40,725 nt of DNA from Octopus bimaculoides (Eukaryota), in contig NC_068990.1 in assembly GCF_001194135.2 (NCBI RefSeq), positions 64,990,728-65,031,452 of the forward strand, in the 5' to 3' direction. Position 1 is the first letter of the stretch. Each line of letters begins with the position of its first letter. Positions 14,553 to 35,689 of this stretch are shown here, piece after piece. The position numbers and the translations under genes are program-made. Below the pieces are notes generated by a model, which ran no database searches, had not been told where the DNA came from, and saw only the letters and a program-made list of their open reading frames with translations.

Positions 14553-14836
14553 TTAACTGTCCTCAATGGCATATTTATTCTTTAGCTCTGCCACTATCGC
14601 ATTCAGCTCACTGATTCGCAGGGCGTCTAGTAGTTCTGCAATTCTATTGGAATTATCCCTGTTGTTATCCCTCCACAGAACTAAGAGGGTAAAAATTTGC
14701 TTGAAAGAGTCAGAAGGATGGTCAAGTTGGATTCTTTCAATGTCAGCTTGTTGTAAGCCCAACTGGAGACCAACTGCAAACCAATCTTTGCCAAGTTTGG
14801 CAGCCAAATACCTTAAACCCAGATCACTCAGCAGGC
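14553..14836 (-). CDS. MFHAS1: Coding exon 3: death domain (GLLSDLGLRYLAAKLGKDWFAVGLQLGLQQADIERIQLDHPSDSFKQIFTLLVLWRD...ELLDALRISELNAIVAELKNKYAIEDS*)
   Basis: Acceptor ttcttttcttcatattttccAG (AG at 14838-14837), phase 1. It shows the typical death-fold pattern LAxxLGxDWxxVGxxLGLxxxDIxxIxxDHP...QxxxLLxxW...LLxAL. TAA at 14555-14553. Confidence 0.85.
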
Positions 14837-14904
14837 CTGGAAAATATGAAGAAAAGAATTTTTATTTTTAAATAAAATAAAAACAAACTTATAATCATTT
14901 CTCT

Positions 14905-15114
14905 TTTACACTTTTACTTGTTTCAGTCATTTGACTGCGGCCATGCTGGAGCACCGCCTTTTAGTCGAGCAAATCGACCCCAGGACTTATTCTTTGGAAG
15001 CCTAGTACTTATTCTATCGGTCTGTTTTGCCGAACCGCTAGGTTACGGGGACGTAAACACACCAGCATCGGTTGTCAAGCGATGGTGGGGGGACAAACAC
15101 AGACACACAAACAC

Positions 15115-15146
<32 letters not shown>

Positions 15147-15268
15147 GACAGGCTTCTTTCAGTTTCCGTCTACCAAATCCACTCACAAGGCTTTGGTCGG
15201 CCCGAGGCTATAGTAGAAGACACTTGCCCAAGGTGCCACGCAGTGGGACTGAACCCAGAGCCATGTGG
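14905..15268 (-). mobile_element. SINE family B, young copy; head lost in a gap
   Basis: High identity to the reverse complement of 35063-35460. Confidence 0.85.
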
Positions 15269-15844
15269 NNNNNNNNNNNNNNNNNNNNNNNNNNNNNNNN
15301 NNNNNNNNNNNNNNNNNNNNNNNNNNNNNNNNNNNNNNNNNNNNNNNNNNNNNNNNNNNNNNNNNNNNNNNNNNNNNNNNNNNNNNNNNNNNNNNNNNNN
15401 NNNNNNNNNNNNNNNNNNNNNNNNNNNNNNNNNNNNNNNNNNNNNNNNNNNNNNNNNNNNNNNNNNNNNNNNNNNNNNNNNNNNNNNNNNNNNNNNNNNN
15501 NNNNNNNNNNNNNNNNNNNNNNNNNNNNNNNNNNNNNNNNNNNNNNNNNNNNNNNNNNNNNNNNNNNNNNNNNNNNNNNNNNNNNNNNNNNNNNNNNNNN
15601 NNNNNNNNNNNNNNNNNNNNNNNNNNNNNNNNNNNNNNNNNNNNNNNNNNNNNNNNNNNNNNNNNNNNNNNNNNNNNNNNNNNNNNNNNNNTCTCTCTCT
15701 CTCTCTTTCCCCAACTGCGGTAGCCATGTAACTCCTCCACAGCAAGACACCTGTTTCAGTTCCTCTATGATAGTTTAAGCTTTCACCACCTGGCACAAAC
15801 ACACCTCTCTCAATACTACTTTTCCTCTCAGTTGAGGAGTCTTT

Positions 15845-16050
15845 CAGTTCTATATTTAAGAGATGAGGAATTATTTACATTATTTACATTTGATGGATAT
15901 TTGTCCTCATCTTGTTTGTCGTTAACATATTTCGGCTGATATACCCTCCAGCCTTCATCGGGTGTCTTGGGGAAATTTCGAACCTGGGTTCTCATTCCTA
16001 AGGTATTTTTTGATGTTGTTATTGTTGTTGCTGTTATTATTATTATTCCT
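15845..16050 (-). mobile_element. Family E partial copy (3' part with degenerate hammerhead-like motif)
   Basis: cagttctatatttaagagatgaggaatt...ttcggctgatataccctccagccttcatcgggtgtcttggggaaatttcgaacc. Another terminal fragment lies at about 27084-27130. Confidence 0.75.
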
Positions 16051-16708
16051 CATGAAATCATTTTAAAATGATACCTATAGATATCATGATCCCATACATC
16101 TGACATCTGAATAAACTGAGGCAATTTACAATAAAGTTATTCTACAAAAACACAAAGAAATGCATGCAGTAGATTCATAACTGCAAACCAATGAGCCTTA
16201 CTTCAATACTTTATATAGGCAAAGATTGCAATTTTAAGCAGTGCTCCTAGCTATTTTCTTCAACTTTGGAGATGGGTGAAAAAAATAGGAGTTATCTTCA
16301 GGCCTAAAACTTAGGCTGAATCCCTAACAGTAGAGTGAACTCATTAAACAAGTCCAAGAAGAAGACAAAGGTGAGAAACTAGGTAACAGATAAAGTCTAC
16401 AACACATGAACAGGAATAGTTCTTCTGTTAGGTTTCCACACAGTTTCTATCAACCAATTTCACTCAGAAAGATTGGACTGATCAAAGGCTATGGTAGACA
16501 ACACTTACCCAGGGTGTCATTCTGCAGGACTCAATCTGGAACCATGTAGTTGCAAAGTAAACTTCTAAACTACACAGTAATACACAGTTGAGTTGAATGG
16601 TTCACAGATGGACCACAAGTCGAGAATGGAAGTAGCAGAGAGAAATGGGAAACAAGATGTATAGTATGAAAATATATTAAAAAAGAAAACAAATTGCAGT
16701 TTATTTAC

Positions 16709-16819
16709 CAGTATTGGCAGAAGATCCATCAATATCATCCATGGTTTGCATCAAGATATTGCACCTGTGCATGAAATCAACTGTGGTCTGAATATGCTTT
16801 GGTAAGTCTTCTTGGAATT
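16709..16819 (-). CDS. MFHAS1: Coding exon 2 (111 nt, phase 1-1) of the ROCO gene: linker EFQEDLPKHIQTTVDFMHRCNILMQTMDDIDGSSANTG
   Basis: Acceptor cttccgtttcttttcattAG (AG at 16821-16820) and donor CTG|GTAAAT after 16709. The frame is stop-free and phase-compatible with both neighbouring exons. It is too short for the ORF track. Confidence 0.8.
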
Positions 16820-16934
16820 CTAATGAAAAGAAACGGAAGAAAAATTTTCAAATAAGAGAAGAGAATTTAAAAATAGCAATGAGTATCAATCATTATCATC
16901 AGTACTATACTAACATCAATAATTTCCCTTCTGA

Positions 16935-17125
16935 GCTGACAGAATCGTTAATATGCCAGGCAAAATGCTTACCAGCATTTCATCTGTCTTTACGTTCTGA
17001 GTTCAGATTTCACTGAGGCCGACTTCACCTTTCATCCGTTTTTGGGGTCAATAAAATAAGTTGATCTAATCGACTTACTCTTCCTGCCAAACTTGCTGGC
17101 CTTGTGCCAAAATCTGAAATCAATA
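16935..17125 (+). mobile_element. SINE family A copy
   Basis: gagctgacagaatcgttaa...ttctgagttcagatt...gacttcacctttcatcc...ggccttgtgccaaaatctgaaat. Confidence 0.75.
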
Positions 17126-17153
17126 ATTTCCCTTCTGTCAACAAAGTTTAGTG

Positions 17154-17411
17154 TAGAGTTTCTCAACCATTTTCTACCTACGGATCCCTTTGATTCCTAT
17201 TTTACTCTATTGGACCCTTCATAGCCATTTGATGTTTAAAAAAATCCTGTTATATTTTTATAATTAAATATTATTAGGAATTGCATTAAAATAATTGTCG
17301 AAATATTTTGTGTACTGCAGGAGTATAACTAATTCATTGCAAATATATTTTAACAACAAAATCTTATATGGACCCCAGAAGGGCCATATGGAACCCAGTT
17401 CAGAACTCCTG
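17154..17411. mobile_element. hAT-type MITE
   Basis: Degenerate TIRs tagagtttctcaac / gttcagaactcctg. Perfect 8-bp TSD GTTTAGTG (17146-17153 and 17412-17419). The body is related to 33821-34200. Confidence 0.8.
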
Positions 17412-17829
17412 GTTTAGTGCCATCAACAACAACAACCTTAAGCTGTACAAGACAGAACATTAACTAGATTAACCTAAACCAGTTTAATCTGCATTACCAG
17501 CAACAGTGGCTCCTGTAGATGTAAGTTTTTCTCAAAGAAGCCCCTATAAAGTGACTGCTGTTTCACCTACTCATATTAACACTATTTCTGCCACTTTATT
17601 ATATCATTAAGGATATCTCTTGACCATTAGATTGCATATATATACGTGCATACATACATATATATGGTAGGCTTCTTTCAGTTTCATAGCAAATCTACTC
17701 ACAAGGCTTTGGTCAGCTCTAGGCTATAGTAAAACACACTTATTCAAGGTGTCCATGCATGTCTATACATGTGTGTGTGTGTATGTATATNNNNNNNNNN
17801 ATATATATATGAATGTGTGCATGTGTAAT

Positions 17830-18140
17830 TCTTCATCACCATTGTTTAATGTCCCCCTTCCATGCTGGCATGGGTTGGACAGTTTGACAGGAGCTGGCCA
17901 GGCAGAAGACTGCAACTGATTTCTGTGTCTCTTTTGACATAGTTTTTATGGCTGAATGCCCTTCCTAACAACAACCACTCCGCAAAGTAGGCTGAGTGCT
18001 TTTTACGTGGCACCAACACAGGCGAGGTCAGTTTTGACATGGTTTTTACAGTTGGATGCCCTTCCAAATGCTAACCACTTTACAGTGTGGACTGGATACT
18101 TTTTAAGTGGCACCAGCACTGGCAGGGTCACTAAGTAACT
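17830..18140 (-). mobile_element. SINE-like family C (ggttggcgttaggaagggcatcc...gcatggaaagcggacgttaaa(tga)n tail)
   Basis: ccttccatgctggcatgggttggacagtttgac...gcccttcctaac...gtgcttttttacgtggcacc, with an internally repeated unit. Confidence 0.7.
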
Positions 18141-18239
18141 TGCAAGCTAAATAATGTTTGAGAGAGGAAGGGCATTGGAGGAGGATATCTTGTGTCAGGT
18201 GATGAAAGGTTTACAGTGTGATGGAGAGACAAAGAGACA

Positions 18240-18600
18240 GATACAGATGTCTTGCTGTAGAGGAGGTACATGGTTACCCAGTCAGAGAAAGAGAGAGAGA
18301 CAGTTAACAAGGGAGAGAGACGGAGAGTTAACAAGAAAGAGGGCAGAAACAGGTGTACTGCTGTAAAGGAGATACATGGTTACCTAGCCAGAGGGAAGAG
18401 CAAGAGAAGGAGGGAGAGAGTGTGATCAAGAATGAGAGCAGAAACAGATGTGCTGCTGTAGAAGATGTACATGGTTACCCAAGGGGGGGGGGGAGAAAGA
18501 GAGAGGGAGAAAGAGTGATCAAGAATGACGGCAGAAAACAGGTGTGCTGCTGTAGAGAAGATACATGGTTACCCAGCCAAGGGGAAAGTAAGGGAAAGAA
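18240..18600 (+). repeat. Purine-rich minisatellite, 4 units of about 95-105 bp; an inverted unit lies at about 15692-15775
   Basis: The core tgctgtag..gag.tacatggttacccagcc recurs near 18250, 18355, 18450 and 18545. The reverse-complement core ggtagccatgtaactcctccacagcaagacacctg lies at about 15718-15755. Confidence 0.75.
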
Positions 18601-18768
18601 GAGAGAGAGAGAGGGGGGAAGAGGGGGAGAAGCAAGAGAGTGCAGGAGAGAGAAGGTGGCAAAGTGCCTGGGTATACTCACAAAGAACAGGGATCAGAGC
18701 ATAGATGGGATGGTAGAGTAAGGACAAGAGAGATAAATGATGGCAGGTGCCAGAGCATACTCCCAAGA

Positions 18769-19160
18769 TTGTTGTTGTTTATTGGCACTCCGTCGCTTAC
18801 AACGTCGAGGGTTCCAGTTGATCCGATCAACGGAACACCCTGCTCGTGAAATTAACATGCAAGTGGCTGAGCACTCCACAGACACGTGTACCCTTAACGT
18901 AGTTCTCGGGGATATTCAGCGTGACACAGTGTGACAAGGCTGACCCTTTGAATTACAGGCACAACAGAAACAGGAAGTAAGAGTGAGAGAAAGTTGTGGT
19001 GAAAGAGTACAGCAGGGTTCGCCACCATCCCCTGCCAGAGCCTCGTGGAGCTTTAGGTGTTTTCACTCAATAAACACTCACAAGGCCCGGTCTAGGAATC
19101 GAAACTGCGATCCTATGACAGCAAGTCTACTGCCCTAACCACTGGGCCATTGCACCTCCA
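18769..19160 (-). mobile_element. tRNA-derived SINE (family D), apparently full length with a (CAA)n tail
   Basis: Minus strand: A-box TGGCCCAGTGG, B-box GTTTCGATTCC, about 390-nt body, ending ...gcgacggagtgccaataaacaacaacaa. Confidence 0.75.
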
Positions 19161-19529
19161 CACTCCCAAGATATAGAGATCATAATATACATGGCAGGGT
19201 ACTGCCAAGACAGTATGATTGAGTAGGGAGCAGGGGTGGGGAAAGTAATGATACAGTGAGCAGGGTAGTGGGGACAGGAGTGGGGAGTGGGAGATAATCA
19301 TAGTGTATGAAGAGGAAATGTGAGAAAGAGAGGCAATGCAGTTTGGTTTGTCAGGGTAGGGTGTATTAAAATGTTATTGTTACATGTGGGTAGAACACAA
19401 TGCTTCTAGAACTCAGTTTCACTGATGTGAGCAGGTCTCCTCTAGAATCTTATATCACCAGACATCTCGGTCCATTGTCATTTCCTTTGTGAGCCCCAAC
19501 ATCCTGAGACTGGACCTCACCAGGTCTTC

Positions 19530-19565
<36 letters not shown>

Positions 19566-20069
19566 AGCTGTATAATGAAGTCAAACCAAATAGTGACATT
19601 TTAAAATCAATTACTACATACATTTCAGGTTTGCATAATATATTATAGAAAATGCAACCTTAGTAAGTTAAAGTGTTTCAAAGACATGAAGAAATCGAGG
19701 GAAATCTTTCAATATACATGTATATAAATGCATACGTTTGCATGTATACATGTGTGTGTATATATATATATATATTAATGTATGTTACATGCATGTGTAT
19801 ATCTATGAATTTATGTGCATGTACATGTATGTAGAAATGTGTATGTAAGTTATAATTTAGCATTAAATTTGACAGTAATTGTTATTGTTTTTGGGGACTG
19901 TTTAGCTTAATGCTTAAAGCACTCAGCCAGTATCTGAGGGGTATGGGTTTGAGTGCTGTAGCCACCTTCTGACAACTTTTTTCCCATCTTGTAAGGGTAA
20001 ATAACCAATCTTTCTCTGTTGTCTGTACAACTTTACTGTGTTAGAAATGTACTTTTTTGTCTGCAAAAT

Positions 20070-20430
20070 ATCATCATCATCATCATCATCATTTAACGTC
20101 TGTTTTCCATGCTGGCATGGGTTGGACAGTTTTGACTGAAAACAAGTAAGTTGGGGAGCTGCACCAGGTTCCAATCTGATTTGGCATGGTTTCTACAGTT
20201 GGATGCCCTTCCTAGTGCCAACCACTCTAAGAGTGCAGTGGGTGCTTTTTACATGCCACCAGCATAGGTGCCAGTTACAAAACACTGGCATCGGCCATGA
20301 CTGTGATCTCACTTGGCTTGACAGGTTTTCTCAAGCACAGTATATTGCTAAAGGTCATTTGTCACTGCTTCTGTGAGGCCCAAAGTTCTAAGGGTGCTTT
20401 TTACATGCCACCAGCACGGTGTGCCAGGTA
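20070..20430 (-). mobile_element. SINE-like family C copy
   Basis: (cat)n ttaacgtctgttttccatgctggcatgggttggacag...ggatgcccttcctagtgccaaccactc...gtgctttttacatgccacc. Confidence 0.75.
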
Positions 20431-22276
20431 TGCAACTGGTCTTGTAATTTATTGATAGTCCTAACGGACCTGAACAGCACCATTGTTTTTAAATGTTAGC
20501 TGACCAATTAGGTTGTAGGATTGATTTTGACTTCACCCCACTACGCATAGGGATATTGAGATTAGGTTTCGGTCAATAAGTAGCAAATATTAACATCGCA
20601 CTAAGGTTTTACCCAGTTTTTCTGTCATTAATGTACTTATGTATTAATTTTCCCTTAACAGGTTCAATTTAAGTTATTTCTGCCAACTTCTTTCATAATG
20701 CTATATCTATTAAATAGTGGTTAGCCTCTAACTTCTGGCCCCTGTAACATGGACCATACCATTAAACCCATCACATAACATACTACCTTCACTATTTCCC
20801 TCAATATAATGGAAACACGATGTAAACCACAGCCTACCAGTGGCTTTATTTACTTACCACAGGATGGAATACCATGGATTATAATAACACCTTAAAATGA
20901 AGTTCCTACCTTTCCTTACCATGTCTAATACATTACATTTTCTTTTTTTTATTTTCACCTATTTTATTCTATCTTGTCTTATTTTACTCTGCTCTATTTT
21001 TCTAACTGAATTTCCCACATTTTAGTTTCCTAACATTTGTACTCTCTGAAGAAGCCTTGAGGCTCAACCGTTATCCAATCTCTGTCCAATGTTTGTTCAT
21101 CCCTGTATATCATTGACATGATGAGGATGACTTGGAAGATTCTGAGGCCTCATGGCAGAAATGGCCATAAGGAATTTGTATTTGTACACTTATCTATTAT
21201 NNNNNNNNNNNNNNNNNNNNNNNNNNNNNNNNNNNNNNNNNNNNNNNNNNNNNNNNNNNNNNNNNNNNNNNNNNNNNNNNNNNNNNNNNCACTTAAACAC
21301 ATGTTTATCATTTAATAAATAGATATAATGAAATGTTTACTGGCTGGTATTTGTTGATTTTATACCTTCTCCATTTTCTTATATGCCTTATAAATCCTGG
21401 GTAAATTTTCAATTTACCCCTACCCATACCTAGTATTCAGTTGTAATATTGCCATGCAATAGTAAGCACTTGGTTAAAAATACGTAGGAACACATCCAGT
21501 AGTATATTGGATATTTAATATCCCTTAGATGGTTTCTTAACTTCTAACTCATAGACATAGGATTGATTTGTTCAACTAAACGTGGTGCTCCAGCATGGCT
21601 GCAGTTAAATGACTGAAACAAGTAAAAAAAAAAAAAAGAGAGAGTACACATAGATTATGCACACATATTATGCTTTTGAGATCAAATTCTACTTGAATCA
21701 ACTTAACTTTCAGACTTAAGTGATCAATAAAATAATAGTAATATATTTGGATAGAGTTAAGTCTCCATTCTTCCTATTTTTATAAATCAAAGAAGAAAGG
21801 GGGAAAAAATATCCATAACCATTATAGTAATAATAACAGAACTTCTGCTAGTCTGGATTCTTTTAGAATTTGATTAAAAAAAAATCTGTATTAGATTAAA
21901 AAAAAACTCTGTATAAGAAGTGTCAGAAACGGTAAAGCATCAACCAAAATGCCTGATAGTATTTATTTTTAACCCTGAGGCATTGATTTTATTGACTGTT
22001 AACCTTTAGCTATAAAATATCAGCTTTGTACACCAATGTGAGAAATTCTTAAATGTTGTGGATTGGGGGAAAGCAACAGGTAAGGAGACCCTTTTCAGAT
22101 AATGTGTTCAAAGGAACAATACAATAAATTGTTACTGAAATGGTCTGGTTTGACTCAATAGAATCAAGGTTAATGACAGTATGAAAAATGATAGAGAATT
22201 CTTGAAAAAGGTAATTTTACTAAAAAGAAAAGTTAGATATGAAAAAAAAAAAGAATATTGGGAATGACTAACTTAC

Positions 22277-25200
22277 CTGGATCAAGGAAGTAGACAAAAC
22301 AAGCAGGGATGGGACAATCTTTTTGATTAGGGCACTGCACGTGGTAGACTCCCTTGGGGCAGCGACGTTCCAAAACTTTCCCTGAGAACTGGTATGGTTC
22401 CTCATTACCTGTCATGATGCAATGCGAGCAAAGTAGTTTTATTTCAACAAGTGCAAATGGCCACTCATGTAGAAGACCAAGCATGTCGTGCCAAGATGCG
22501 TGAATGAGACCCCAGAGTTCTTGCATGTCACTGCCTCGTACAGACAGAGTAACTAGCATCATATTTTGACCATTCAATTCTTTCTTTTCTTTCTGCAGCA
22601 AACATTTACTCAAATTGTATCTAGCATAGATACCATTGCGCCAACCATCGCAGTAAGATACATAGTTCTGAAAACGAACAGATACTTTTTCAAAGAAATT
22701 TGGTGGACCCTTCTTTGGAAATTGAAACTGAATTGTGAGCTGTACAGTGTCCTTAGGGACCTGAGCAGGCCACTTTGAGACAAGATTTGCTGGTGAGACA
22801 TCAGGTAAGAACCAAGGAAATAAAAGTAATCGGGTGTAGTCCAGTAACGAGACATTAATCTCATTAATGGGTATCTCATAGCAAAGATCAAACTTTAACA
22901 TGAGTGAGGTAAATGTCTCAAGAGCACTGACATCAAGTTGAAAGTGGCAAAGAGTATAGCGAAGAAGTTCAACTGACATCATTCCTTCATGAAGGAAAAG
23001 TTGCTTGGCATTTCTAAATTGTTCCTCAGTCATGTTCACTTTCAAGCCCAAATGCCGATGATACACCATAATATCCTCAAAATCATGCCGAAATATTGAG
23101 CGCAACATATCAATCAGTGTCTCTGGTCGATGGAATACAAGCTGATTGAGCTTAGGATTGTCATAGTACCAAATGATTTCTCCAGTTGCATGAAAATATT
23201 TTAAAATAACTTGTAAACTTTTTTCAGGAGACCCTTCCATGCTAATCATTGACTGGCCTAAGCTTTTCATGAGATCAGTAAAAATCTTTAATGTATCATT
23301 CCAATGAAGTATTTTCTCTTCTCGTTGCTGCAGCTCAATTAAGAAACTATACCAAGACTTTGGAAGAGGCCGCTGTTCTGATTCTTTCAATGTAGTGATG
23401 ACTCTATCAACAAATTCATTAATGCCAACAAGATCATCTGCACAACTGACTGTTGAAATATCATCAGGTAATTTCACTCGAGTATTTACCATACGCAGCA
23501 GGTGACTAACTTTCTCAGAATCTCGTTCAACATCAAAATCTGAAAAACCACTCTTGCCAGTGTCTTGTTTCTGTGTACTATCTAACTTCTCTTTCAGCTG
23601 ATTTATTTCCATAAAAAGATTATCAATTTTTGTGTTCTCTTCAGAATGCATCTTCTCCAGGATGTAAGCTTTCTTCTCTGCTATTTCATTCTCATTACAA
23701 AGATCAGCGTGAGTTCCAACTAACTGAATAGATGCTCCTGGTGCTCTGTCCAGAATTCCTTCCAGCCAGTCTCCAATCCTAAAGTCATAGGATTCAGGAT
23801 CACAAGAAAACACATTCAGATCAAAAACAAGAATGTGCAAAGCTTCTGAGGTAAGAAACATATGATGAGCAGCAGAATAAATATGATGCCCACCAAAATC
23901 AAGAATCTGTACCCGTAAGCTTTCTTCAGGTTCCCAGAGATGGCGTTCCAATACCCACGTCCGTTCATCATCTGCAGTTAATCGTGATCGGCCCAAAAGC
24001 AATGCATTTCGTAAGCTAGTTTTTCCAGCCTTCACAGCACCAGTAAGAATCATCTTCCTCCGATGGTTTGCCTCACTAACTCGAATTTCTTTCAAGTATT
24101 TAAACAATGCCCCCACACCTTGATCACATATTTCCTGCCGTGGTTTTATCAAATAATTGCCTTGCAAGAAAATGCCATTTGTTTTTTCAAGGCCAGTAAG
24201 CTGGTCTAAGAGGAGAGGCAAGCGCTTGAGTTTGTTCTCTGTCAAGTTCAAAAAGTCTAAGTTGTCAAGTCGGTGGAACGTGTCCGGAATTTCTTCAAGC
24301 AAGTTGTGAGCTAAATTGAGTGACTGAAGCGACTGGCAACTAGATATTTCATTAGGCAAAAATTTTAGTTTATTATTGCACACACTCAATTTCCGTAAAA
24401 CATGAAGCCTTCTAATACTACCAGGAATTGTTTCAAGATAATTGTCTGACAGTTCAATTTCCTCCAACTGCTGAAGATTGAAGAATTCTTCAGGCAATTG
24501 GAGTAAAGCATTTTTCTGCATGAGAAATACTTTCAAATTTTCTAATCCACTAATTTCAGGAGGTATTGTAGTAAAATAATTGCCACTTATATTCAGTTTA
24601 ACTAAACTCTTGAGGTTAAGCAAAGCTACAGGTATTTTAGGAATAAACCGCATAGCGGCAGTAAGATGAAGTTCTTGCAAATTAGTACAATCAGCAATTT
24701 TTTTAGATATATATTTTAAGTGATTTCCACGCAAGCTGAGAATTTTCAGCTTTTTTAAATTGCCAATTTCATCAGGGAGTGTGTCAATTTGGTGCCAACT
24801 GCAGTCAAGGGTGAGCAGTTCTGGCAAATTGCACACTGAAGTTGGTAATGTCCGTAATCCACCTCGCGGACTCCACTTTCCAGACAGATTAAGAATCTGC
24901 AACTTCTTGCATTGACTCATTTGTTCCGGAACTTCGGACAACAGATTTCCACCGATATTCAGATGGCGCAGATTCTTAAGCTCTCCGATTTCCGGCGGTA
25001 GCCTTTCAACGCTGTTCTCACACAGGTTTAGCTCAACCAAACTGGTTAGTTTGAAAATAGACTGTGATAGCTCTGAGAGGTTGTTATAACTAAGGTTTAA
25101 TTTCTGTAATTCAGAAATTTGAGTAAAACAGTTTGGAATAGTTTGGAGGTAGTTGCCAACAGCATGGAAAACTTTTAAGCTAGTTAGAGAACCTAGACTA

Positions 25201-25388
25201 CTGCCGCGTACAGGGAAGGTGTACAATCGCATAAATGGGAGATAGAGTTCATCCAGCTCCAAGGAGTACAAAGACTTGGGTAGCCAACCCTTGTATTTGC
25301 CATCTGGAACAGTAAGCACAGTTCGACCATTACTTTTTGTCTCCAAATAGGTCAATAGTTGCTCTGATACTTGGCTGTGGGATGACAT
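22277..25388 (-). CDS. MFHAS1: Coding exon 1 (3112 nt, codons 1-1037 plus 1 nt) of an MFHAS1/MASL1-like ROCO protein: about 14-15 LRRs, ROC GTPase, COR
   Basis: 1051-aa ORF. LRRs follow LxxLxLxxNxLxxLP. ROC motifs are GAVKAGKT (P-loop), DFGGH, VGTHADLC and VSC. VGTHADLCNENEIAEK and LLHEWPFALVEIKLLCSHC...CP closely recall human MFHAS1 (VGTHADLCGERELEEK; LLQEWPGLHYTVHILCSKC; from memory). The acceptor tttttacttctttacAG opens the exon at 25398, 10 nt before the ATG. The donor CAG|GTAAGT follows 22277. The symbol means MFHAS1-like; orthology is untested. Confidence 0.93.
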
Positions 25389-26239
25389 CTTTGGTATTCT
25401 GTAAAGAAGTAAAAAAAAAACATTAGAGTTAAATTAATCAGAGATAAAAGTGAACTTAACGATATTAAAGAGTCACTGAGAAAATTTATTACACAACAGT
25501 AATACATGAGCACTCATCAGATACACATACCTCGGAAGACACAATACAACATCCAGGAATCACATTCATCAAACAACTCAACACAACACTCCTAAGATGG
25601 CATGATACAATAATTGCCACATTTACAAAATCTCTATTGTAGTAATCAGCCGTAGAGTACAAGGGAGAAAACTGTGCTGGTATAGACGTGCAATGTATAT
25701 GACAGAGAGTATTTTCATTAAAGGTCAAGTGATACAAGTAAGTGGAAGGAGTCTTCAAAAGAGTAGGACAAGGAAAGAATGGTGAGCAGCCTGATCTCAG
25801 AATGCTTAATTTCATGAAGGAGACAGATGATCAGAGACTGCAACAAGTGGCAAGGTATTATGCCATAAAAGAATCATTCAACCATGCCAGTACAGCAAAG
25901 CTGATATAAAATTATGATGATTTTTGTAAATTAAGCATTTATGAAACTGAATGATAAACCTGTTAGATATTTAATGTCAAGTTAACTCTGAATGGAAAAA
26001 ACTATGATCAAAAACATTCAGGCCATGGTAATATTGTCATTTATTTGGACATAGTGTATCTAGAACATTATCTAATGTGTCCTTCCTTAATTTTTTTGGT
26101 TTTAAGAGAGTAAAGTGTAATTTGAAAAGATTTACTTGCTATATCTAGCTAATCAGAATTTGAGAAGATTAAAAACCGTGGCTGTCCTTGCATACAGGCA
26201 TGTCTCCTGCATCCCTCTTCAGCTGAGCAAATTAATCTT

Positions 26240-29684: not shown

Positions 29685-30730
29685 CTAGTAGAGCTGTAGT
29701 TTTCTTAGCCTATCCCTATAGCTCATCCACTGCACTGTTTCAATCTTTTTAGTGTAGTGGCGCGGGACTGCTTCAAGCTCCGCTGTTAGTTTGGCACTAT
29801 GTGGTGACCATAACTGGGAACAGTAGTCAAGGCAGCTGAGAACAAAGGTTCTCCACAGGGTCAACATAGTTTCTTGGTCTCTTGTCTTGAAGGACCTCAG
29901 TATCCATCCTGCCAGTTGTCCGCACTTTGCTGCCACCTTGCTTGTGTGCATATGAAATGATGTGTCATTGCACATACTGATCCCCAAGTCTTTCACTGCA
30001 TGTGACTCGGATTATAGTGCCTTCAGGTCCTGTAAATGTAGATCATACTGTATTTGTACTGAGTTGATAGTGCAGTGTTTAAAATTTTCCAGCATTAAAC
30101 TGCATGTTGTTTATTTCAGCCCACTTGTATATTGAGCTTAAGTCCTGCTGTAAGATTGTGACATCCCCTTGGTTTTTTTATTGCCTTTGATAAATTTGGG
30201 TCATCGGCGTAGCTAGTTACAGTCGCTGTCCGAGTGACTGTAGGCATGTCTAAGAGGGCTATTGTAAATAGTAATGGCCCCAGAACAGTTCCCTGGGGGA
30301 CACCACTAAGGATTTGAGTTTCCTCAGAAAGGGCGCCATTGGCTGCAACAACCTGACTTCTGTTTTTAAGGAAGTCATGCAACCACTCTCCCAGTTTACC
30401 AGCAATGCCAAGATCTCGTAGCTTATGACTCATCATGTCATGATCTACCTTATCAAATGCCTTTGCAAAGTCACGGTATATCACATTGACATCTGAATGA
30501 TCAAGCAGCTGTTTCAAAACTCAGTCATAGTGCTGTAGGAGCTTTGTGAGGTAGCTTCTTCCAGGGGATAAGCCATGCTGAGTGTTGTTCAGTAGGTCAT
30601 TTTCTTCTAAGAACATAATCAACTTCTTTCTGATGATTCGCTCCATGACTTTACTGATATGTGAAGTCAGAGAGATTGGCCTGTAGTTTTTGGCCTCTGC
30701 TCTGCTTCTACCTTTGTGAATAGGGCATAT
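29685..30730 (-). mobile_element. CR1-like LINE reverse-transcriptase fragment (pseudogenised)
   Basis: ICPIHKG...NYRPISLTSH...DFAKAFDKVDH...SGVPQGTVLGPLLF...YADD...LDYCSQLWSP...RLRKLQLY, with stops and frameshifts. Confidence 0.9.
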
Positions 30731-30735
30731 AATAT

Positions 30736-31628
30736 AGTGACACCGACGCTACTCTAGAATCACAACATGGTAAAGCTGACCATGTATGAACCGACGGAAA
30801 CCATGGACATGCAGCCTACAAGAAACTCTCAGAATCTTTCCAGCTTGAACTTCCATAAGGCAAACTGGAAACAAATTGAGTAAGAGATCCTCAAACAAAA
30901 CTGGCCTAAATGTCTCTCCTCACCAGACATCAACATGAAACTTCATCAATTCATGTCTAATGCAAGCCATATGCTACAAATGTGTCCTGGAGAGAAAGGC
31001 CACTGTACACAAGAACAAAATCCCCAGGGCGAGGAAAATTCTTATGAGGCAGCGTACAAAAGTTTCAAATGGCCTAAACAAACAAATTGAAAGCAGTGAA
31101 AAGTCCTGCCTGAAAATACAATTGCTAGAGATTGAAAACAATCTGCAACTCTCCCATGAAAAAGAAAGAGCAAAAGATGCCTGGGCTATAGACAATATAA
31201 AATCTAACCCCCGAGATTTCTACAATTTTGCCAAAGAAACTGCTTCAGTGCACTGCAGAATAGGGCCACTCCTCGAAAAAGATGGTGCACTAACAGGAAA
31301 CCCAAGGAGGATAAGTGAAATACTAAATGAGCAATTCAAAAGTATTTTCACTCCACCCCAGGACACTTGCAAGTCAGCAATCCAACTGACTTTTGTACCA
31401 CTGCAGATATAAAAACAGAGACAGTGATGATTGATTACATCAATATAAAGGAAGACAATGTAATAAGGGCTACAGAAGAAATGAACCCAAACTCAGCTAC
31501 TGGCCCTGATGGATTCCCAGCAATCTTTCTAAAAGTATGTAAACGAGTCCTAGCAAGACCACTGCAGTCCCTCTTTCAGAGCTTCCTTGCAACTTCCAAG
31601 AAAACTGCAGGAGGGTAAAATATGCCCT
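30736..31628 (+). mobile_element. CR1-like LINE ORF2 fragment, from the end of the endonuclease to the start of RT
   Basis: VTPTLL*NHN (degenerate SDH), NFHKANWKQI, IKSNPRDFYNFAK, RISEILNEQFKSIFT, SATGPDGFPAIFLK, KLQEGKICP, then a 10-N gap. Confidence 0.85.
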
Positions 31629-31638
31629 NNNNNNNNNN

Positions 31639-32272
31639 CTGTTCATAATGGCCCTCTCAGACATGCCCTCAACCACACAGAAAGCCACGATCACAAGTTA
31701 TGCAGATGATACAAAAGTCTCACAGGTAATACAGAACCCTGAAGACACTATGCACCTGCAATATGAGCTGGATGAAATATACAAGTGGGTTGAAAAGAAT
31801 AGCATACAGTTTAATGCTGAAAAGTTTCAAGCTTTGTGCTATCAGCATGCAAAACTAAATGCAATATCAATTAAATACACTGGACCTGGAGGGATTGCAA
31901 TCCCAGAGGCACCGTCAGTGCAAGACATGAGTAATGATGCATCCCTCCATGTGCATGTTCCTAAATTGGCAATGAAATGCAGGCAGCTGACCAGATGCAT
32001 TCTTAGAACTTTTAGAACAAGAGATCAGGAAAACATGATGGTCCTCTGGAGGACACTTGTCCTAAGCCACTTTGGCTATTGCTCTCAGCTAAGGTGACCA
32101 ACCAGTGTCAAATTAATCTTGAGGCAATCCAACAAAGCTACACAAAGAAGATAGCCTCTATGCAGCATATAAGGTACTGGGAAAGACTCAAGAGATTAAG
32201 ACTCTATTCCTTAGAACGCAAGCGAGAAAGATATGCCATAATATACATCTGGAAGATCCTCGAAGGACTTGT
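31639..32272 (+). mobile_element. CR1-like LINE ORF2 C-terminal fragment
   Basis: LFIMALSDMP...SYADDTKV...QFNAEKFQ...LWRTLVLSHFGYCSQL...YWERLKRLRLYSLERKRERYAIIYIWKILEGLV, ending at a Helitron-like fragment. Confidence 0.88.
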
Positions 32273-35062: not shown

Positions 35063-35460
35063 AGGCGCAGGAGTGGCTGTGTGGTAAGTAGCTTGCTTAC
35101 CAACCACATGGTTCCAGGTTCAGTCCCACTGCGTGGCACCTTGGGCAAGTGTCTTCTACTATAGCCTCAGGCCGACCAAAGCCTTGTGAGTGGATTTGGT
35201 AGACAGAAACTGAAAGAAGCCTGTCGTATATATGTATATGTATATATATATATGTGTGTGTTTGTGTTTGTCCCCCCAACATCGCTTTACAACCGATGCT
35301 GGTGTGTTTACGTCCCCGTAACTTAGTGGTTTGGCAAAAGAGATTGATAGAATAAGTACTAGGCTTACAAAGAATAAGTCCTGGGGGTCGATTCGCTCGA
35401 CTAAAGGTGGTGCTCCAGTATGGCCGCAGTCAAATGACTGAAACAAGTAAAAGAGAAAAG
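35063..35460 (+). mobile_element. SINE family B, full length: tRNA head, CORE-like ccttgggcaagt domain, internal (TA)n/(TG)n, A/G-rich tail
   Basis: A-box-like TGGCTGTGTGG, B-box-like GGTTCAGTCCC, then gtggcaccttgggcaagtgtcttc (CORE-type motif). Further fragments at about 12205-12265, 12600-12735, 16420-16580, 17660-17750, 21560-21640 and 36520-36650. Confidence 0.85.
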
Positions 35461-35689
35461 AGAGTATACAAAAGTTTCACATTAACTATGTCTGACAAAA
35501 TAGACCAAGGCTATAATGACCTTGATCATAGGTCTACTTAATCAAAGCAGACCTAGGGCTGAACAACAAACTATAAAGCTACTCATTAGCTCTGGATTCA
35601 GTAACCGTAACTAACTATATGCAAGATGTATCTTTTCAAGCAAAAACTATACATCTGTTGCTTGCGAGAAAAGTCTAGAAAATCTAGTA

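Follow-up and report, generated by a model that had tools for sequence, protein, structure and literature searches.

In the published view, ROCO/AP-GTPases are nucleoside triphosphate (NTP) switches whose leucine-rich repeats (LRRs) serve as sensors and whose C-terminal effectors vary (PMC8195603). CARD and death domains occur in ROCOs of Trichoplax (PMC4104024), TIR and Death have been recorded in COR proteins of Aplysia (PMC9334734, Fig. 6 legend), and brown-algal ROCOs are regarded as candidate receptors (PMC11378527). Here we analyze a 40,725-nucleotide (nt) stretch of the Octopus bimaculoides genome (NCBI RefSeq assembly GCF_001194135.2, contig NC_068990.1, positions 64,990,728 to 65,031,452), referred to throughout as the window, whose minus strand carries a gene for an 1168-amino-acid (aa) protein in which LRRs, a Roc GTPase and a COR domain are followed by a linker and a death domain (DD).

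Vertebrate MFHAS1 (human NP_004216.2, 1052 aa) is likewise a kinase-less LRR-Roc-COR protein and has the C-terminal COR motif ...CxHC...P..F.G...C......VYP in common with the octopus protein, but it lacks a death domain (PMC9573974, PMC6337361), whereas the octopus protein carries 131 extra residues of linker and DD, and the two are only ~26% identical over ROC-COR. Human MFHAS1 forms complexes in a nucleotide-dependent manner (cited in PMC6337361). It also modulates signaling by the Toll-like receptors (TLRs) TLR2 and TLR4 (PMC4658032, PMC6851511), so that an innate-immune role is plausible, though not established. Among characterized ROCOs, DAPK1 alone carries a death domain behind ROC-COR (PMC6337361, PMC6320773); it has no LRR, its N-terminal part being a Ca/CaM kinase and ankyrin repeats, whereas the N-terminus of the octopus protein is made of LRRs. 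PIDD1, which assembles into the PIDDosome with RAIDD (PDB 2of5), also has N-terminal LRRs and supplies the best sequence and fold match to the octopus DD, but its ZU5, UPA and autoprocessing module have no counterpart in the octopus protein (Pfam), where a GTPase switch stands in their place. The Trichoplax and Aplysia proteins, with LRRs and CARD, death or TIR domains on the flanks of ROC-COR, were reported at catalog level (PMC4104024; PMC9334734), and the molluscan orthogroup of the octopus protein was not treated there. The NLR/STAND proteins (NOD/NLRP, Apaf-1) combine, by the same logic, a repeat sensor with an NTP switch and a death-fold effector and draw on a similar repertoire of CARD, DD, caspase and TIR; unlike them, the octopus protein uses a Ras-like Roc GTPase with COR rather than a NACHT/NB-ARC ATPase, and its LRRs are N-terminal and its effector C-terminal. 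The Roco protein of Chlorobium tepidum (PDB 6hlu) has the LRR-Roc-COR fold in common with it and is its second-best full-length structural match, but is bacterial and has no death domain.

Three minus-strand exons (25388-22277, 16819-16709 and 14836-14553) join at GT/AG borders into a 3507-nt in-frame coding sequence for 1168 aa (Table 1), and both introns are phase 1, the codon being split behind its first base. Exon 1 ends in a consensus donor (...GATCCAG/gtaagt at 22277/22276), and exon 2 is bordered by ...cattag/ on its 5' side and by /gtaaat on its 3' side. On the same strand the window holds open reading frames (ORFs) of 1051 aa (25388-22233) and 84 aa (14807-14553). All three runs of N within the gene lie in introns and none in an exon, and the reading frame is therefore independent of gap length. 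The joined protein is identical in 1168 of 1168 residues to RefSeq XP_014784932.1/XP_052827222.1, named "MFHAS1 homolog"; reconstructing it from the DNA thus correctly recovered a gene model that was already public and discovered nothing new. The junctions 22277/16819 and 16709/14836 and the frame of about 1168 aa given in the initial annotation proved exact, as judged by the splice sites, the Octopus sinensis locus and the RefSeq identity.

Orthologs of 1168 aa occur in O. vulgaris and O. sinensis, both within the same 90% cluster. The orthologous O. sinensis locus is free of N, its exons of 3112, 111 and 284 nt equal those of the window in length, and every junction is GT/AG; the gaps in the window consequently conceal nothing that affects the coding sequence. 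Between the two species exons 1, 2 and 3 are 98.1, 96.4 and 96.8% identical, and alignable intron sequence 87-90% (86-90% for the alignable blocks of intron 1). The ratio of non-synonymous to synonymous substitution rates (dN/dS) between O. bimaculoides and O. sinensis is 0.27 for the whole gene, with 0.13 in the LRR region, 0.18 in Roc and 0.44 in COR, and the gene is under overall purifying selection.

Table 1. Features of the octopus LRR-Roc-COR-DD gene, in window coordinates.
Feature	Position	Strand	Details
Probable 3' splice acceptor	25389..25400	-	ctttacag/AATACCAAAG, 10 nt upstream of ATG; read from sequence
Coding exon 1	22277..25388	-	ATG 25388-25386; aa 1-1037 (LRR, Roc, COR) and first base of codon 1038
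LRR region	24114..25271	-	aa ~40-425; ~15 repeats in model; Pfam LRR_8 1e-37, LRR_14, LRR_4
Roc GTPase	23703..24056	-	aa 445-562; Pfam Roc 34.9 bits (cut-off 27)
COR-A	22866..23363	-	aa 676-841; Pfam 32.3 bits, slightly below cut-off 35.3
COR-B	22323..22739	-	aa 884-1022; Pfam COR-B 28.1 bits (cut-off 27)
Intron 1	16820..22276	-	phase 1, GT...AG; holds gaps 17791-17800 and 21201-21289
Coding exon 2	16709..16819	-	111 nt, phase 1-1; encodes linker EFQEDLPKHIQTTVDFMHRCNILMQTMDDIDGSSANT(G); helix in model
Intron 2	14837..16708	-	phase 1, GT...AG; holds gap 15269-15691, abutting repeat 14900-15268
Exon 3, coding part	14553..14836	-	aa 1075-1168 and stop TAA 14555-14553; acceptor ...ttccag/
Death domain	14577..14813	-	aa 1083-1161; Pfam Death (PF00531) 35.0 bits in whole protein, 38.7 bits in C-terminus alone; cut-off 22.6

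The LRR-Roc-COR part of the protein is recognized by both sequence and fold. A full-length AlphaFold2 model built from a 46-sequence alignment (mean predicted local distance difference test score, pLDDT, 87.2; predicted template modeling score, pTM, 0.68) opens with ~15 LRRs and a Roc fold; two long helices (566-635) and COR come next, then the helix of the linker, a hinge and a helical C-terminal domain. Its LRR region forms regular strand-helix repeats at aa 47-381 with pLDDT >90. In Foldseek searches this model matched first LRRK1 (8e05_A, E 2.9e-33), then the LRR-Roc-COR structure of C. tepidum Roco (6hlu_A, E 7e-30) and then LRRK2, the matches to these three ranging from E 1e-33 to 1e-25 over ~1030-1058 alignment columns; by sequence, Roc matches in the PDB were to the LRRK2 Roc domain, down to E 2.5e-9. 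The G1-G4 motifs of Roc are intact, comprising the P-loop GAVKAGKT (aa 450-457; 24018-24041), the switch-I T477, DFGG (497-500) and THAD (559-562), and the Roc-COR unit appears competent. With a Roc domain that retains its nucleotide-binding motifs and a COR domain directly C-terminal to it, the protein is a ROCO. A Pfam scan of all 1168 aa returned no kinase, ankyrin, ZU5, UPA, NACHT or NB-ARC match, and no secretory or membrane domain was matched either.

The C-terminal domain is a genuine PIDD/RAIDD-like death domain on a flexible tether. By sequence, the last 131 residues matched the PIDD DD (2of5_H, E 3.5e-8, 37 bits) and CRADD/RAIDD (2.5e-6) in the PDB, followed by FADD and ankyrin. When the last 141 residues were modeled separately with AlphaFold2 (pLDDT 77.5 overall, 85-92 in the DD blocks), the model contained, by DSSP, five helices behind the linker, the first of them long, and in Foldseek it again found the PIDD DD 2of5_H first (target template modeling score, TM, 0.85; root-mean-square deviation 2.0 A), then RAIDD, FADD and ankyrin-G, the top 21 fold matches in the PDB all being death domains. 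The tether is a 37-aa linker with a helix at aa 1043-1056 and a short disordered hinge at 1063-1069 in the AlphaFold2 model. The sequence encoded by its 111-nt exon is conserved in bivalves and a gastropod as EFQDDLxxHIK...DTVDG, and among the aligned proteins the linker exon is found only in molluscan ones. The LRR-ROC-COR-death layout read by the initial annotation from the DNA is thus borne out by Pfam and by AlphaFold2 and Foldseek alike; the proposed likeness to PIDD and RAIDD holds by sequence and by fold, with PIDD first and RAIDD second, and a death fold was found by profile (Pfam Death, 35.0 bits) as well as by structure (PIDD, target TM 0.85).

Relatives were sought by an exhaustive HMMER scan of the ROC-COR-DD part against 1.84 billion representatives, which gave 2127 matches at E<=1e-3; in a separate homolog search the DD query found 0 matches and the COR region just three fragments. 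The best matches, ~50% identical and collinear to the C-terminus, are bivalve and gastropod proteins: those of the unionids Sinanodonta and Potamilus (1154 aa) and of Solemya and Pinctada among the bivalves, and that of Batillaria (1167 aa) among the gastropods. Pfam assigns LRR-Roc-COR-Death to the Potamilus protein and, weakly, to that of Batillaria. In a neighbor-joining (NJ) tree of ROC-COR sequences the octopus, Batillaria and unionid proteins group together with 100% bootstrap support. In a relative, a 1173-nt Logan contig (SRR27896763) carries an uninterrupted ORF of COR end, linker and DD followed by ~670 nt of 3' untranslated region, and matches ...G/AATTCCAAGA... at the first junction; the contig looks like spliced mRNA.

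Death domains behind ROC-COR are also found outside molluscs. A sea anemone (Actinostola) protein, KAK3732553.1, and several Branchiostoma proteins named "MFHAS1 homolog" or "MFHAS1" are LRR-Roc-COR-Death by Pfam, and a 2607-aa protein of the annelid Owenia ends in ROC-COR-DD by phmmer and our own DD profile. That profile is a home-made iterated DD hidden Markov model (HMM), of whose matched proteins nine were checked by Pfam, while the others, including that of Owenia, rest on phmmer and the profile. One of its matches was rejected as false, a DD call at 274-331, inside the LRRs, of the vertebrate protein P0113, where Pfam finds no Death. P0113 is a Logan protein that served as the vertebrate MFHAS1 representative, having been chosen by its 64% identity to a human MFHAS1 sequence that was used for this choice only; it is LRR-Roc-COR with no Death domain by Pfam and ends 11 residues past the conserved IYPP. 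With P0113 as query, amphioxus proteins rank 2-14, with scores far above octopus, Potamilus ranks 17th and octopus 40th. The same profile finds four DDs in a 770-aa protein, P0150 (122-187, 201-266, 280-351 and 676-747, scoring 24-36 bits against the octopus DD), which has no ROC-COR match.

The position of the introns bears on the age of this arrangement. Proteins of Potamilus, Actinostola and amphioxus (P0110) were mapped onto their own genomic loci. The last intron of Potamilus is phase 1 at DGT/G/NMLSD, which is the position of octopus intron 2 (ANT/G/LLSD). Actinostola has two coding exons separated by a single phase-1 intron at LIYPMQ/A/SAS, no more than one residue (<=1) from octopus intron 1 (FVYFLDP/E/FQ), and amphioxus P0110 is split by many introns, of which the final one is phase 1 at LVYPPHRDP/D/QKMDSV, directly before the death domain. 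A phase-1 intron at the COR/DD boundary is thus common to a cnidarian, two molluscs and a cephalochordate. From these positions, the DD exon behind a phase-1 intron looks old in the LRR-ROC-COR family, and since vertebrate MFHAS1 ends at the COR/DD boundary, its form without a DD looks derived; a statement that vertebrate MFHAS1 is an effector-less member of an effector-bearing family was not found in the literature searched.

The initial annotation had proposed that a DD was added in the MFHAS1-like lineage by phase-1 exons, a structure it took as consistent with exon shuffling. The linker exon is indeed phase 1-1, but as the DD and its boundary intron also occur in molluscs, a cnidarian and amphioxus, any shuffling was ancient or recurrent, and an addition within the MFHAS1-like lineage is not supported, given the DDs of molluscs, Actinostola and Branchiostoma together with the boundary phase-1 intron. 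Its statements that human MFHAS1 lacks a death domain (table in PMC9573974; PMC6337361) and that ROCO proteins with death domains exist in other invertebrates (Trichoplax, PMC4104024; Aplysia, PMC9334734; and the sea anemone and amphioxus proteins above) agree with the record. Novelty in the MFHAS1 lineage does not stand, the protein being already in RefSeq and the "MFHAS1 homologs" of other animals also bearing DDs, and NLR-like logic built on a GTPase had been described before (PMC8195603, PMC4104024, PMC11378527).

Among the 150 closest representatives, the region behind COR is not always Death by Pfam. Single or double CARDs stand there in the Lingula "MFHAS1 homolog" P0026 and in P0019, P0021, P0024, P0029, P0066 and P0078, and other occupants are a complete caspase (P0058, 177 bits), an OTU protease (P0040), TIR_2 (P0122; locus L006) and Trypsin_2 (P0016, Branchiostoma). 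Such a repertoire of CARD, caspase, TIR and other modules, as assigned by domain profiles, is what one would expect if the family served as sensors in immunity or cell death. It also agrees with the published accounts of ROCO/AP-GTPases (PMC8195603) and of the Trichoplax, Aplysia and brown-algal proteins (PMC4104024, PMC9334734, PMC11378527).

Taken together, the locus is very probably a gene of three coding exons for an 1168-aa LRR-Roc-COR-linker-DD protein, whose molluscan orthogroup belongs to a family of kinase-less LRR-ROC-COR proteins that is old among metazoans and has an interchangeable C-terminal module. Several points weigh against this reading. To our knowledge, no partner, ligand, GTPase activity or phenotype has been described for any DD-carrying member. 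The RefSeq XP_ models are computational, and the octopus splice joins were read from genomic sequence. The COR-A match, at 32.3 bits, is below its Pfam cut-off of 35.3, its fold being backed by the full-length structural match to LRRK1 and C. tepidum Roco. The deep nodes of the NJ tree reach only 3-45% bootstrap, with vertebrate MFHAS1 grouping with DD-bearing amphioxus proteins at 22-27%, and orthology to vertebrate MFHAS1 is therefore not claimed. The octopus DD scores 46.7 bits against that of amphioxus P0031, 37 against human PIDD, 16 against amphioxus P0110 and 7 against Actinostola; since the ROCO-attached DDs are this heterogeneous, a single ancient fusion is not proven, and these scores are compatible with DDs that may have been captured or replaced repeatedly at the same intron. 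Finally, between O. bimaculoides and O. sinensis the death domain has a dN/dS of ~1.0, from seven non-synonymous and two synonymous changes. Its difference from the rest of the gene is not significant (Fisher p = 0.15), and the raised value, amounting to nine substitutions, was accordingly rejected as evidence of positive selection or decay.

Gene structure, domains, folds, conservation and intron positions are shown above; GTP gating, DD partners and a biological role are inferred, and would probably be linked as follows. The LRR solenoid would provide a sensing or autoinhibitory surface, and ROC-COR would act as a nucleotide-dependent dimerization or oligomerization switch, by analogy with bacterial Roco, LRRK2 and human MFHAS1 (PMC6337361). 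Once switched, ROC-COR would expose or cluster the death domain, which in turn could recruit DD partners or an adaptor by homotypic binding, and the signal might feed into immunity or cell death through a caspase or an NF-kB-type pathway. A broader proposal, which we regard as possible but put forward tentatively, is that kinase-less LRR-ROC-COR proteins carrying Death, CARD, caspase, TIR, OTU or trypsin-like modules would be a GTPase-based counterpart of NLRs in non-vertebrate animals, that the octopus protein would nucleate a PIDDosome-like assembly upon an oligomeric change of Roc-COR, and that vertebrate MFHAS1 would be a relic whose effector exon was lost at the conserved phase-1 intron. 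These comparisons suggest that human MFHAS1, a poorly understood modulator of the TLR pathway, is a truncated descendant of an effector-bearing family, and that a largely unstudied group of candidate sensors, NLR-like but switched by a GTPase, exists in invertebrates. If the DD is a nucleotide-gated output, the octopus protein would be a tractable model for ROC-COR switching without an attached kinase.

The main rival to a signaling output is a DD that serves, as in DAPK1, as a regulatory or localization module, for example by docking to a receptor or by folding back on the LRRs or COR, rather than as the nucleator of a signalosome. The DAPK1 precedent speaks for it, the C-terminal DD behind ROC-COR there mediating regulatory protein contacts (PMC6337361, PMC6320773), and in the models the linker helix could pack on COR. 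It is also established for the PIDDosome and Myddosome that helical DD assemblies usually contain five to eight DDs (5-8), more than a ROC-COR dimer would bring together. Yet the octopus DD is nearest to those of oligomerizing adaptors (PIDD, RAIDD and FADD), and paralogous relatives with a caspase, CARD or TIR in the same slot point to an output role, so that such a regulatory DD seems to us unlikely, if still a serious competitor.

A death domain that is normally absent from the product is far harder to sustain. Under this alternative the DD exons would lie outside the mRNA, the main product would be the 1051-aa DD-less form made by read-through or polyadenylation past the donor at 22277, and the 1168-aa model would have been joined only by computation. 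The length of the read-through ORF, close to the 1052 aa of human MFHAS1 (PMC9573974), and the translation of P0005 in this form are in its favor. Between octopus species, however, exons 2 and 3 agree at 96-97% of positions and the introns at 87-90%, with GT/AG kept; the bivalve and gastropod orthologs are collinear over both junctions, Potamilus having the same last intron; an intron-free, transcript-like contig of a relative covers COR end, linker and DD; and the same model was made for three Octopus species and under two O. bimaculoides RefSeq accessions. We hold this alternative to be very improbable. A recent exon shuffling that added a PIDD/RAIDD-type DD to a DD-less ancestor in the cephalopod or molluscan MFHAS1 lineage can likewise be given hardly any credence: exon 2 has phase-1 borders on both sides, exon 3 also opens in phase 1, the linker exon was seen only in the molluscan proteins and human PIDD is closer to the octopus DD than are some of the DDs attached to other ROCOs, making replacement of a DD at the intron possible, but linker and DD are common to cephalopods, bivalves and a gastropod, LRR-Roc-COR-Death is also present in sea anemone and amphioxus (and, by our own DD profile only, at an annelid C-terminus), and a phase-1 intron lies at the same COR/DD boundary in every lineage mapped, where vertebrate P0113 ends 11 residues past IYPP.

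Other products of the locus can be read from its exon structure. Exon 2 is symmetric (16709-16819, phase 1-1), and its skipping would keep the frame and give a linker-less LRR-ROC-COR-DD protein of 1131 aa, the arrangement seen in Actinostola and amphioxus. Read-through past the exon-1 donor (22233-22276, minus strand) would add 14 codons before a stop and yield the 1051-aa ORF without a DD. A Logan contig of a related octopus was translated in this read-through form (P0005); that contig probably derives from genomic DNA and not from an mRNA that kept the intron, and an exact-sequence cluster look-up of the 1051-aa ORF found no entry in the protein collection. An O. vulgaris isoform of 1179 aa (CAI9729021.1) has its death domain cut off after ...LWRDNNR; the break corresponds to a GT within exon 3, aacagggGTAAT as read from O. 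sinensis DNA (window 14649-14669, minus strand; L001 23610-23630). O. bimaculoides carries aacagggATAAT at that site (14649-14669, minus strand), and the internal exon 3 donor is therefore unusable in its genome. At the 5' end, the acceptor-like ctttacag before the ATG, with an equivalent ...cag/aataccaaagATG ahead of the ATG in O. sinensis, suggests an untranslated 5' exon further upstream. Literature searches for MFHAS1 in octopus or oyster returned nothing.

The remainder of the window is rich in repeated sequence. An interspersed repeat of ~370 bp is present at 14900-15268, 35104-35463, 10656-11008 and 4879-5062, the copies being 75-93% identical to one another. The first abuts the gap at 15269-15691 and the last starts directly after another gap (4766-4878); interspersed repeats are the type of sequence that breaks assemblies. 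Upstream of the gene, reverse-transcriptase fragments (Pfam RVT_1, 5.5e-14 and 4.9e-4) lie at 30116-30517 on the minus and 31648-32097 on the plus strand, accompanied by ORFs at 29685-29996 (minus) and 30960-31412 (plus), around a 10-nt gap at 31629-31638, and they look like decayed copies of non-LTR (long terminal repeat) retrotransposons. Within intron 1, the stretch 18000-19000 has a GC content of 0.475 against ~0.36 elsewhere, a GC skew of +0.36 and direct repeats at 18215-18612, and looks like a tandem or low-complexity repeat.

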